Assembly (NCBI RefSeq): GCF_016432865.1
Contig: NC_067400.1
Coordinates: forward strand, 522,536,001 to 522,600,000
Source: Antechinus flavipes
Taxonomy: Eukaryota
Direction of reading: 5' to 3'
DNA length: 64,000 nt
The position numbers were made by a program, and so were the translations under genes. Numbering within the stretch: position 1 is the stretch's first letter; the number at the start of each line of letters is the position of its first letter. The notes beneath the pieces were generated by a model. The model worked only from the letters and a program-made list of their open reading frames with translations. It had not been told where the DNA came from and did no database searches. This document shows, piece after piece, positions 13,280 through 52,682 of this stretch.

Positions 13280-13402
13280 GCCCTTGACGGGAATGTATAT
13301 GATCATCTGAAGGATTATTTAATAGCATTCAGCAGGACTGAGCTAGAGACATGCCAAGCTATACAGAATACATTCCAGTTTTTATTGGAAACCTCAAGCA
13401 GG
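13280..13402 (+). CDS. FCHSD2: FCHSD2 coding exon (probably exon 9), 123 nt, phase 0-0
   Basis: Pyrimidine tract and AG (tttcttcttcctcatatag), donor gtaagt. Translates ALDGNVYDHLKDYLIAFSRTELETCQAIQNTFQFLLETSSR, matching the recalled FCHSD2 F-BAR region. Confidence 0.95.
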
Positions 13403-13564
13403 GTAAGTGTGAACCCAGTTATCTAATACAATAGCCCTTAAGCAGGTAGAATGTTATAGCCTTACTTATTCTAAAATGAAATAAACCAACTAGAGCAAAG
13501 TGCCTTCTCTAAAACAAGTCTGGGAGCACTGGCTTTTCGATGAGTTCTGTCTTCTCTATGCTAT

Positions 13565-32493: not shown

Positions 32494-32589
32494 GTGGTGC
32501 GGGATTACAATCTTCAGCTGTTTTTACAAGAGAATTCTGTGTTTCATAAACCGCCACCTTTCCAGTTCCATCCCAGTGACAGCGATACC
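32494..32589 (+). CDS. FCHSD2: FCHSD2 coding exon (probably exon 10), 96 nt, phase 0-0
   Basis: Acceptor ctgttctctctgcag, donor gtaagg. Translates VVRDYNLQLFLQENSVFHKPPPFQFHPSDSDT. Confidence 0.95.
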
Positions 32590-35141
32590 GTAAGGAAATT
32601 CTTCTGCCTTCTTGTCTTTGTTTTACCTTTTTTTTATTATATTCATAGCCTTCTCCAGGAAGCAGACAAAAGCCAGGCTGGCCTTACTAAATTTTCTACT
32701 TGCCCTCAACATCTGGCATTCCTGAATTAGATGGAAAGCCCTGACTAGTTCTCACCAGCTCTGTGGAGCCAATTTTATTACAAGCAACATGGAAGAGAAA
32801 GCCAAGCCATCCCCTGCAGAGAGACTGTAGCAATCTTAATTCTAGCAATGTGATAAAAATGCTCATCAGGTCCTGATACTATTATTCTGAACTAACAGCT
32901 CTTTACTAAGATGTGTGAAAATCCCAGAGAAGTTACTGAAATTCTGAAAATCTAAGTAGAAAAAGGAAAGAGCAAGGAAAACAATCCCAGAAAAATCATA
33001 GTTATTTTTGTTTAAGCAGATAGAAATAAAATACCCTGCATAATGTTGTCCCTTCCTAGGACTTGGTTTCTTCATTGATAAAATAAAAGAGGTTGGACTA
33101 GGTGACCTCTAACTTTGCAACTCTTGATCTTTGATCCTGTGTTTTAAACTAAATGCCACCAACATATCATGAAACCTTGCTGTAATGTGATAGCTTTAAT
33201 CCAATCATCTGAAACATAGATTGAATAGTCAACATGGGCTTGAGTCCAAGCAACCTTAGCTCCCCTAAGTGTCTATTTCGTTTCTCATTTATAACATTGT
33301 TTCTTTAAAAAAAAATTGCATGTAACCCATAATTTTCATTCTACTATATTCACATAATTAATTAACAATATTAGTCTTCACAGAAAATCACCAGTTTTTC
33401 TGCACATGACACTTTGTGTCTTAGGTCCTTCCCCAAAAATCCTTGGTTAAATATTAGTGGAGTAAATGATATAATACTGAGTGCCTTCATGAATTTTTAA
33501 CTTTGTATTCTGATTGTTCCTTTCTCTTCTTCAATCCAGTTAGAGTACCACAAATAACTCTTTATTTCTGTGGTGCTTTACATTCTATAAAACATTTTCT
33601 TTATAACTATAACTATGAGGTGAATAATGTAGATATTAATAAACATTTTACAGACGAAGACGAAGAACATTTTACAAACTCAAAAAATTTAAGCAAGTTA
33701 CTTTCCTAAGAGCTATACAGTTAGCAAAACTAAGATCCAGTCTGTGAACCCAGGTCTAAAGGGCGTTTTTCTTATTGTGTACTATACTACCTCTTTTGTA
33801 ATCTTAGCAGTGATTTTGAAAGAAAAGAATTACATTCAACCTTTCTATTCCTGGGTTCACTCTCTGAAACATGAGAATGAGAAAAACTTTTCTAAGAAAT
33901 AAGTCATGAATCAAGGCAGCTGGGGTATAGTACAGTAAGACTCACCTCAGAGTTAGGAAGCTCTGTGTTCAAGTCCCGTCTTTCATATATATTAGTTATA
34001 AATGAACCATTGGACAAATCACTCAACCTCTCAATGTCTTATTGAGACAATGAATTGTAGAGTATCTGTCAAGCTGCATCCATGAATGGAGTTTCCTCAC
34101 CAAGAGTTCCTTACACAGATGAAATTATAGATTCATTATTGGATGGTATAAGGAAAAGAATTAACATTAAGATTATAGCAGGCATTTTTATTGTGCTTTG
34201 CATTCAATAAATTGCTTTAAGACACATTACTTAAGTTATTGATTAATTCTGCACTGGTTTTACAATGTTAAACAAAAACAGTACTATAGGAATCAGTTAC
34301 GTAGAAACAGTGTTATAAAGAGAACAGCAGACCTATTGGCCTTGCAAGGAATCATTGACACTGGGGCTCCAATACTAGCTCATCCATTAAGTCATCCATC
34401 CAATTTGTGTCTCAGGTGATCAAGTAAATAGCATTTCTCAATGTTACAGGGGGTTTGGATATATTGCACAAATAATCTTCTTGTGACAACATTATGTGGC
34501 ATTTCCTTTGTTCCATCAGCTTTCACTGCAACAATATTAGGTAGATAGTCTGATATTATTATCCTTATTCTTAAAGGAGAGCAGTGAGGCTCATACAAGT
34601 TAGTAAATGTTGGGCCATAACTCAAACTCTGGAGTTTTCCTTCCATCTAGACCTCATTCCACCACATTAGCTACATCTTTTAAGGCAGGTTTAAAATATG
34701 TCACACATAGCCAGATATCCAGTAGTTGTTGTCAGATATAGTGGGATCTGATTGTAATTCTTCTCCACCAAATAGGTCTCAACTTGTTTGTTACTTTCTG
34801 CTGATGACCTGTAAATTAGCTTGGGATTGTCCCTATAGGGAATGGAGGTTTGGCTGTGAGTGCGAGAGGGGAAGACCAAGAAGAGTAGGGAAAAGGAGCT
34901 ATGGTATTTTTTGGTTAAAAAAAGTTAAGCCTTTAACTAAAATTATAATCAAAAGCAAATTATCCTGACTTTTATCATCAGAAAAAATAGGCCACTTTAG
35001 CCCTTTTCTAACTTTTCTTAAGCCTTCCTTTTCTCACCTACTTCCTGCTAAATGTTCTTAACTGCTCTCCTTGTGCCTTTGTGCGTTGCAGCTCTAACTC
35101 TATGCTCTGTTTCCTCTGTCTCTGGGCTTTCTCTTGGACAG

Positions 35142-35213
35142 AGTTTAAATGCAGTGCAGCTGGTGGATATTGAGCCCTCACCCGTCAGTGCTATGAGAAT
35201 GACCATAGCAGAG
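35142..35213 (+). CDS. FCHSD2: Candidate alternative (cassette) FCHSD2 exon, 72 nt, in frame
   Basis: Branch-like ctaac at 35094-98, pyrimidine tract and cag acceptor, stop-free SLNAVQLVDIEPSPVSAMRMTIAE, donor GAG|gtacat. Phase 0-0, like its neighbours. Confidence 0.7.
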
Positions 35214-35475
35214 GTACATGATCTGGGAGTATCTGTCAGGGTGGGGTTCCCCTGGGGAGCTGGGGGATGAACACACAGACACAGCAGTGAATCATGAAGA
35301 AAATCCATTCACTGACTGAATTGACAGTTAAATGTACCATGGTGTTAGTTCCCAATTCCTCCTGTTTTGTGATATGTGATCAGCTGTGGGATTTTACTTC
35401 TCATCATTTTCATGTAGAAATTCAGATTCTAATTTGACCAACTTTAATCTTGACTTGAGGAAGAGCTTTCAAATC

Positions 35476-35537: not shown

Positions 35538-37631
35538 TGGCATCTCTGCTTCTGGAAACATGCTTGGCATCCATTTGTTACTTTTTTCAATGTGTTGACC
35601 AGGTTTATATATTGAATTTATATATTTATGTATTGAATATTTTGGATTTATACTGAACTTTTGTAATTAGTGCTGCAATTAACTTATTATATTACATAGG
35701 GTAAATGGCATTTTTTTCTATTTCAAATAAAACCAACCACATATAGAATTGTGAAATATCCATTCTAAATAAAATTCTTTTGAGGTTAATGTCTATTTGT
35801 TAAAATTAGAGGTTTAGGCTAAGCCAGACTGTAGAATGCTTAGATTGCTCTTCTAATTCATGAATTCAGCAAATATTTATTAAGCAGCTCTCTATGCAGA
35901 ACATGAACAATACAGGGATAGATGTTTAAAAGTGTAGCTAAGACGTGATTCCTTCCTGCCTTGGGCAAATTCCCAGCTAAGTAGAGGAAGAAGATAAAAG
36001 CATAGAGAATTTTATTTAAGCCATGGTCCAAGACACCCCTCCAAAAAAAATTTATATCATGGGACCTGGACTTAGGACTTAGGTTAGTACTATATGTTTG
36101 AAATGTCTGACCATGTTATCTTTGGGTTCCATGTACTTGGTATGTAGTGCAAAGCCATAGATTTTCAGAGTTGGAATAGACCTTTGAGACCATCTGATCC
36201 ATCCCTCTCATTTTAGAGAGGAGAAAATTGAGTCCTAGAGAAATGACTTGCCCAAGACAACTCAGTTAATAGATATTTCTACTTTCTTTCTTTGAGCAAA
36301 GCCAAAAAAGCCATTTTGTGGGAGAATTTGCTTCACCTTGCCTTGCTTGGAGAGAAAGTTGCCTGAAAATAATTAGGAGAGTCATTGTAAGAAAGGGCAT
36401 GTCTCTCCCTCTACCTAGTCCCCTAAGCAAAAAAAAAGGAACATTCTGTGTGCTGAGTTGTCAGCTGTAAGAATAGATTGACAGGGTCAATTATCAGGAA
36501 CTCTATTTGGTGGACAAGGTTACCTTACTGTGAGTTGGGGAAAGAAAAGAAAAATAATGAAAATGCCCACATCCAACAAGCTGAGCTAAGCACAACTATA
36601 AAGGAAAAAGTGCTGAGGGGAAAGAGTTCTTTTAGCCAGCTTTTTAATGTTTCCTAATATATGGGGGAGGACACCCTTTCCTCTCCGCTTTCTTTCAGCT
36701 GCATAACAGATCACAGATTGTGGCAGAAAAAAGCTGACAAAGTTCTGGAAATCAGTCATTTTCCTGTTTTTAGCTCTGATGTATTTGTCTAATTAGAGCT
36801 GAGCTTTAAGGATCCTTGATTCATTCACTCAAACATTTATCAAGCAAATCTTCTACAGAAAGTACTATGGTTGACACTAAGAGAGATAGACTTTAGATTG
36901 TGAATAAATGCATGCATGCATGTATGAATGAAAAACACTGATTATGTGCAAAACTCTATGCCAACTGCTGAGAAGACAAACAGAAAAGTAGTCTCTGCTT
37001 TCAAGGAGCTCACATTCTAATAGGAGAAACAACACATATGGGAATTGTAGCTACAGTTATGACGAAAAGTCCCATAGGCCTTAGGATGCAGCAGCAGAGA
37101 TGATGGTGATGCCATTTCTTTCATGGCATCTTCATTCGACAATACCAAGAACTTAGCTAAGACCTGGTCCCTGCCTTCATGGAGTTTACTATCTAAGGTT
37201 GTTATTAAAGGAGGAAGGATTCCTCTTTTATTTTTATTTTTGTTTTCTTTCAATTCTAATTTTTTTCATTTAATTTTAAAATATTTACATTTAAAAAATA
37301 ATTGATATCTCTTACTATTACTTACCTCTTTATCTGTAAAAACAGTATCATAAACCTTAAAGAAGGTGGCATTTAGACTGAGCTGTCAAACATAGGTAGG
37401 AATTTAAAAGTAGAAGGGGAGACATTCCAGGCATAGGGAACATCATGACTAAGGACATGCAGAGGATCTAATGAAGAGAAAGAAAGTCATTCCAGTTTAC
37501 CTGGAGCATACTGTACATGGAGAAGAGTAATGAGATAACACTGGAAAGACAGAGTAACATCAGATTGTGAATTCAGCGAAAGTAGTAGAAGGTTAGGTCT
37601 TTATTCCAATGTGATTGAAAGATAGAGATGA

Positions 37632-43422: not shown

Positions 43423-43539
43423 AGCCGACAGTTGGAATCTGAAACGGGGACCACAGAGGAACACAGCTTAAACAAGGAGGCCCGGAAGTGGGCTACAAGA
43501 GTGGCTCGAGAGCACAAAAACATCGTCCACAACCAGAGG
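43423..43539 (+). CDS. FCHSD2: FCHSD2 coding exon (probably exon 11), 117 nt, phase 0-0
   Basis: Acceptor ttttctctcttatgttttag, donor gtatgt. Translates SRQLESETGTTEEHSLNKEARKWATRVAREHKNIVHNQR. Confidence 0.95.
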
Positions 43540-48003: not shown

Positions 48004-48108
48004 GCCCTGGAAGAGTTAGAATGTCATGGTGTTGCTGTATCAGAGCAAAATCGAGCAGAACTGGAACAGAAGATAGATGAAGCTAGAGAAAGTATTCGTA
48101 AAGCAGAG
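48004..48108 (+). CDS. FCHSD2: FCHSD2 coding exon (probably exon 12), 105 nt, phase 0-0
   Basis: Acceptor ttttcctattttattttatag, donor gtgaga. Translates ALEELECHGVAVSEQNRAELEQKIDEARESIRKAE. Confidence 0.95.
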
Positions 48109-48499
48109 GTGAGACATCTCTCCTGACCCATTCCCTTGTGCACTACCCAGAGAAGCTGGCTACCAATTCTCATTGTTTATTTGGATGGCTCAAAACCCCC
48201 AGTTCATAATGTTTTTGGGAATTGAAAGATACCTATAAATACGTGTGTGTGTGTGTGTGTGTATGCATACAACATAGATACACACAGAGAGGAAGACAAG
48301 GAAAAGGAAAGGCTTCTGTTCTAAATCAGTGAATATTCAGTAGATATTCACTGAGCACAAACTTTGTACTGTCTGCATGGCAGAGAGGGAAGAAGGAAGA
48401 TAGGTGGGAGAGATGATTAAAGGAATAAAAACAAGCATTAAAAAATGTATATTCTTTATCTTATATAAAAGTCTAAGGCAAAGATGTGTGAAAGAATAG

Positions 48500-52525: not shown

Positions 52526-52682
52526 NNNNNNNNNNNNNNNNNNNNNNNNNNNNNNNNNNNNNNNNNNNNNNNNNNNNNNNNNNNNNNNNNNNNNNNNNNN
52601 NNNNNNNNNNNNNNNNNNNNNNNNNNNNNNNNNNNNNNNNNNNNNNNNNNNNNNNNNNNNNNNNNNNNNNNNNNNNNNNNNN
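52526..52682. other. Assembly gap (157 N) interrupting a SINE head that starts near 52465
   Basis: Run of n; the left flank ends in the B-box ttcctgagttcaaat. Confidence 0.99.

Follow-up and report, generated by a model that had tools for sequence, protein, structure and literature searches.

A 72-nt FCHSD2 cassette exon in Antechinus flavipes, probable ortholog of the neural-regulated mouse Fchsd2 exon 11

FCHSD2 exons in the window

We analyzed a 64,000-nt stretch of DNA from Antechinus flavipes (the window), which holds at least five exons of FCHSD2. Local tblastn searches with marsupial proteins placed five exons collinearly on the + strand, covering residues 236-407:

13280-13405, + strand: FCHSD2 coding exon, residues about 236-277 of the marsupial protein (tblastn)
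32494-32589, + strand: upstream constitutive FCHSD2 coding exon, 96 nt, ending ...DSDT, equivalent to mouse exon 10 (tblastn, primer mapping)
35142-35213, + strand: 72-nt cassette exon, 24 codons, phase 0/0, equivalent to mouse Fchsd2 exon 11 (translation, mouse alignment, marsupial peptides)
43423-43539, + strand: downstream constitutive FCHSD2 coding exon, 117 nt, starting SRQLE..., equivalent to mouse exon 12 (phmmer, primer mapping)
48004-48111, + strand: FCHSD2 coding exon, residues about 372-407 of the marsupial protein (tblastn)

The gene was identified from the two constitutive exons that flank the cassette. The upstream one (borders cag/GTG...ACC/gtaagg, with slashes at the exon-intron boundaries) closes on a whole codon and corresponds by tblastn to residues 277-308 of the marsupial FCHSD2 entries P0160 and P0161. 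The downstream one gave 44 matches in a phmmer search of a representative protein library, with best E values from 7e-16 to 1e-13; a word search sees only proteins of similar length, and a 740-aa protein is beyond its reach from this 39-aa exon. Some of the FCHSD2 matches have DSDT abutting SRQLE, and others (P0009, P0011, and P0025) carry between them a 24-aa insert like that of the window. The full-length proteins matched by two full-length database queries carry the Pfam families F-BAR (PF00611) and SH3, and their sources call them “F-BAR and double SH3 domains protein 2.” The flanking coding exons thus match FCHSD2 proteins with an F-BAR and two SH3 domains, which assigns them to this gene. 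A sequence search of a structure database with the flanking exons returned no useful match, probably because the FCHSD2 F-BAR domain is known solely as a 9.2 Å cryo-EM map. Elsewhere in the window, positions 52526-52682 are a run of 157 N, either an assembly gap or a masked stretch.

Anatomy of the cassette exon

The splice signals that surround the 72-nt exon are as follows:

35094-35098, + strand: branch-point-like CTAAC, 45 nt 5' of the exon
35099-35141, + strand: polypyrimidine tract and AG acceptor (...ggacag/AGT, AG at 35140-35141)
35214-35219, + strand: weak GT donor gtacat (GAG/gtacat, GT at 35214-35215)

An earlier note on this DNA had described a CTAAC, a pyrimidine tract, a cag/AGT acceptor, 24 open codons, and a weak donor, and we found each of these at 35094-35219. 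Direct translation of 35142-35213 (+) is free of stops and returns the same 24 residues that the earlier note gave. In motif scans, the CTAAC was the sole YTNAY between -60 and -15 of the exon. The sole AG within the 120 nt 5' of the exon lies at 35090, ahead of the CTAAC, so the acceptor is the first AG past it and the tract between the two is AG-free. The donor is weak because its -3, +4, and +5 positions mismatch the consensus.

The introns on either side measure 2552 nt upstream and 8209 nt downstream. Because the upstream exon ends on a whole codon and the SRQLE exon is in phase, the reading frame stays intact with or without the 72 nt, as had been proposed; the flanking exon boundaries at 32589 and 43423 were likewise confirmed. 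The 472 nt around the cassette exon have no second copy within the 64,000-nt window, which is consistent with non-repeat DNA and agrees with the earlier placement of the exon outside repeats.

Isoforms on record

The identical 24 aa lie between DSDT and SRQLE in three marsupial FCHSD2 proteins from RefSeq, all of them computed gene models: P0160 from Antechinus flavipes (isoform X2), P0161 from Sminthopsis crassicaudata (isoform X2, 763 aa), and P0164 from Dromiciops gliroides (isoform X4). In each of them, both flanking exon peptides also equal the window translation. The cassette exon encodes residues 309-332 of the long isoform P0161.

A 764-aa isoform X1 is common among placental mammals, and platypus also has a 764-aa form. 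Both differ from the 740-aa form by a 24-aa insert at the same junction as in the window, which accounts for the difference in length; the two isoform lengths given in the earlier note were therefore correct. The usual placental insert, found in most of the placental rows inspected, is SLKAAQLVDIELSPVSALRMTIAE, and elephant and sheep are each one residue off. It differs from the window peptide by four changes (N3K, V5A, P12L, and M18L). In some species, such as Gouania (X3/X4) and Gasterosteus (X2/X3), the databases list both a protein with the insert and one that lacks it. At the level of the gene family, both forms of the protein therefore exist, and RT-PCR in mouse shows both bands. The exon had been called “hidden,” a description that does not hold, as it is already present in the RefSeq models of related marsupials and was a known mouse variant by 2011.

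Orthology to mouse Fchsd2 exon 11

Fchsd2 is a validated neural splicing event of the type “exon skip,” for which RT-PCR in mouse yields a 235-nt and a 163-nt product, 72 nt apart (Suzuki et al. 2011, PMC3041816). As P19 cells differentiated into neurons, the longer product increased 19.5-fold between day 0 and day 7 (grade “++”), and the exon was validated by RT-PCR and sequencing; the event carries no mark as a novel variant (PMC3041816). The primer pair E10S/E12AS and the regulated probeset's sequence are given in Tables S1/S2 of the same study (PMC3041816), which permitted a direct comparison with the window.

An ungapped alignment of the window exon with the mouse exon-array probeset has 57 identities over 68 nt. 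Among the 22 codons compared, ten differ, six of them synonymously and four non-synonymously. The Fchsd2E10S primer maps to 32496-32518 with 4 mismatches and Fchsd2E12AS to 43472-43491 with 3 mismatches, and the products predicted from these placements are 163 nt (skipped) and 235 nt (included), exactly the published sizes. Position, length, phase, and similarity at both the nucleotide and protein levels thus make the window exon the ortholog of mouse exon 11. The mouse exon shares with it the length of 72 nt, the phase, and the flanking exons, whereas its peptide differs at 4 of 22 codons, including position 12 (Pro in the window, Leu in mouse), and its introns are 2085 and 4071 nt rather than 2552 and 8209 nt.

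Other mouse studies describe the same event. A coding 72-nt Fchsd2 cassette at gene position 140527-140599 (id CA-207278-138442-140527-140599-144670) belongs to the developmental module M2+ (Weyn-Vanhentenryck et al. 2018, PMC5989265). The inclusion values given for it span 0.28-0.54 (PMC5989265), and a Bayesian network predicts it to be a direct target that is activated by Rbfox (+1) and repressed by Ptbp (-1) (PMC5989265). In 2025, splicing in FUS/hnRNP A2/B1 mouse models was read out with an “Fchsd2 (E10-E12)” assay, and the event was altered by hnRNP A2/B1 depletion, FUS depletion, and FUS knockout (PMC11954880). Hippocampus-specific Fchsd2 isoform usage has been reported in a mouse study, and the supplements of PMC4438066 make no mention of Fchsd2. 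Like Fchsd2, Clta and Snap91 (PMC3041816, Table 2) have short in-frame exons in endocytic machinery whose inclusion shifts with neuronal differentiation; the genes and peptides are unrelated, and the resemblance is in kind only.

These data bear out the proposal of an in-frame, regulated cassette that gives FCHSD2 24 more aa past the F-BAR core: the mouse ortholog is a neural-regulated 72-nt cassette, and proteins with and without the insert exist. Neural regulation has been demonstrated in mouse alone, whereas the window exon is known from its sequence.

Conservation of the 24-aa insert

We located the DSDT/SRQLE junction in 213 FCHSD2 entries. The 24-aa insert is present in 194 of them and absent in 6, and the other 13 have a version of 19, 22, 25, or 27 aa. 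The junction pattern missed the platypus 764-aa isoform, even though this protein matches in full over the query region. Holders of the 24-aa insert include bichir, sturgeon, bowfin, teleosts, frogs, turtle, lizards, snakes, birds, marsupials, and placentals. The earlier note had named beforehand what would speak against its proposal, namely a lack of junction reads together with a peptide and splice sites unconserved in other mammals, and for the peptide the survey of the 213 entries, from fishes to placentals, found the reverse.

Across the 194 sequences, positions 7, 15, and 16 of the insert are invariant and positions 8, 10, 11, 13, 19, 20, and 21 nearly so, which defines a core of Leu7, Val8, Ile10, Glu11, Ser13, Val15, Ser16, Arg19, Met20, and Thr21. 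The first five positions vary widely. In a 36-sequence alignment, mean column identity was 83% for the insert and 91% for its core; three of the four neighboring constitutive exons reached 73-81% and the downstream one 95%. The core is thus at least as conserved as three of the four adjacent constitutive exons. Any feature that ray-finned fishes share with tetrapods dates back more than 400 million years. Judged by these alignments, the insert core is nearly unchanged since before the split between ray-finned and lobe-finned fishes.

Seven of the teleost entries (P0060, P0077, P0081, P0082, P0085, P0089, and P0109) have a 19-aa insert that begins at QLVDIEP and is without the first five variable residues. 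The 19-, 22-, 25-, and 27-aa versions could reflect either an alternative acceptor inside the exon or gene-model artefacts.

Intronic signals and candidate regulators

Two intronic features close to the exon may bear on its regulation:

34992-35093, + strand: CU-rich intronic stretch, candidate PTBP-binding region (pyrimidine content, mouse Ptbp prediction)
35225-35266, + strand: five G-runs (GGG, GGG, GGGG, GGGG, GGGGG) from +12 to +53 (motif scan)

Between 50 and 150 nt 5' of the exon, pyrimidines make up 70-73% of the sequence, versus 50% in the window as a whole, and the stretch contains several TCTT, TTCT, and CTCT motifs. It is a CU tract upstream of the exon, as expected of an exon controlled by PTBP. 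The G-run cluster downstream of the weak donor may be an hnRNP H/F-type intronic enhancer.

An RBFOX exon would be expected to have a (U)GCAUG no more than a few hundred nt 3' of it, and none was found: no GCATG occurs within 1.1 kb 3' of the exon, and the closest is at 36397 (+1184). The RBFOX arm of the mouse model therefore has no proximal motif here. If RBFOX acts on the window exon, it would do so from a distance, or it may not act at all. A (TGCA)n run at 36909-36922, 1.7 kb 3' of the cassette, contains three overlapping TGCATG of the RBFOX type.

The insert in the FCHSD2 protein

The F-BAR domain of FCHSD2 is large (467 aa), with an atypical extra C-terminal coiled coil, and has been resolved only to 9.2 Å (Almeida-Souza et al. 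2018, PMC6057269). The insert, at residues 309-332, falls inside this extended domain. We modeled the long marsupial isoform with AlphaFold2 from a 36-row alignment. In the model, a helix runs to residue 290, residues 291-321 are coil, residues 322-337 form a short helix, and the coiled-coil helices begin at 343. The model is poor (mean pLDDT 53.5, pTM 0.27, residues 289-344 below 50). It weakly suggests that the insert lies within, or borders on, the linker that joins the F-BAR core to the extra coiled coil.

Ser13 is found in 193 of 194 inserts and Pro14 in 167 of 194 (Thr or Ala in carps and catfishes), so a Ser-Pro phosphosite in the insert is possible. The “EPSP” motif is not conserved as a unit: Pro12 occurs in only 107 of 194 inserts and is replaced by Leu or Phe in placentals, while the Ser is near-invariant.

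Interpretation

We consider 35142-35213 to be the ortholog of the known FCHSD2 72-nt alternative cassette, mouse exon 11, with inclusion that is probably low in non-neural cells and higher in neurons, and based on the window exon together with the mouse data we put the probability of this reading at about 93%. The anatomy of the cassette, its orthology, its deep conservation, and the presence of both isoforms in databases are observations of the present analysis. The neural regulation and the predicted regulators are carried over from the mouse papers; regulation in this species and any effect on the protein we only infer.

A chance pseudo-exon, that is, an intronic open frame that is never spliced in, would be in keeping with the weak donor, and splice-like sites around a short open frame may indeed arise by chance. 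Deep conservation of the peptide could not, and we rejected this candidate since the insert is conserved throughout bony vertebrates. The presence of this very peptide at this very position in the annotated FCHSD2 proteins of three marsupials, the six synonymous changes among the ten codon differences from mouse, and the validation of the mouse ortholog by RT-PCR and sequencing also stand against it, leaving it a negligible probability. It is improbable, though less extremely so, that this is a real exon which the lineage uses constitutively, marsupials having no skipped isoform. All three marsupial entries do carry the insert; they were retrieved with insert-containing queries, which favor such matches. 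Against constitutive use, teleosts and placentals have both forms on record, the inclusion values given for mouse cortex are only 0.28-0.54 (PMC5989265), and a weak donor with a CU-rich tract upstream is typical of regulated exons. The numbering of the marsupial entries as X2, X2, and X4 also implies further isoforms.

Under the preferred reading of a regulated cassette, inclusion would bring in 24 residues after the final long helix of the F-BAR core and ahead of the extra C-terminal coiled coil, and skipping would fuse DSDT to SRQLE with the frame intact. Going by mouse, non-neural cells probably include the exon at a low level and neurons at a higher one. The cassette would be repressed by PTBP proteins acting through the long CU-rich tract upstream, as we infer for this genome, and use of the weak donor would be promoted by RBFOX and possibly by factors that bind the G-runs.

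For the protein, our tentative proposal, to which we give somewhat less than even odds, is that the insert forms a neuron-enriched switch in the hinge that joins the F-BAR core to the extra coiled coil. Such a switch may alter autoinhibition, oligomerisation, or binding to flat membranes, perhaps by way of phosphorylation at the near-invariant Ser. We regard it as rather unlikely that the exon is alternative but its insert only a spacer that a flexible linker tolerates, bringing neither isoform-specific function nor phospho-regulation. A spacer of this kind would suit the modeled coil at residues 291-321, with its low confidence, and the wide variation of the first five residues, and the literature searched contained neither a functional study of the insert nor named long and short FCHSD2 isoforms. 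The ten core positions that are invariant or nearly so in 194 sequences, from ray-finned fishes to mammals, are hard to reconcile with a neutral spacer.

The cassette is genuine but already known, being annotated in marsupials and described in mouse. As a discovery it carries no weight, since it is annotated in relatives and has been a splicing read-out in mouse for more than a decade. What a 24-aa insert that is strongly conserved and regulated in neurons does for an endocytic actin regulator is an ordinary, tractable question of cell biology.
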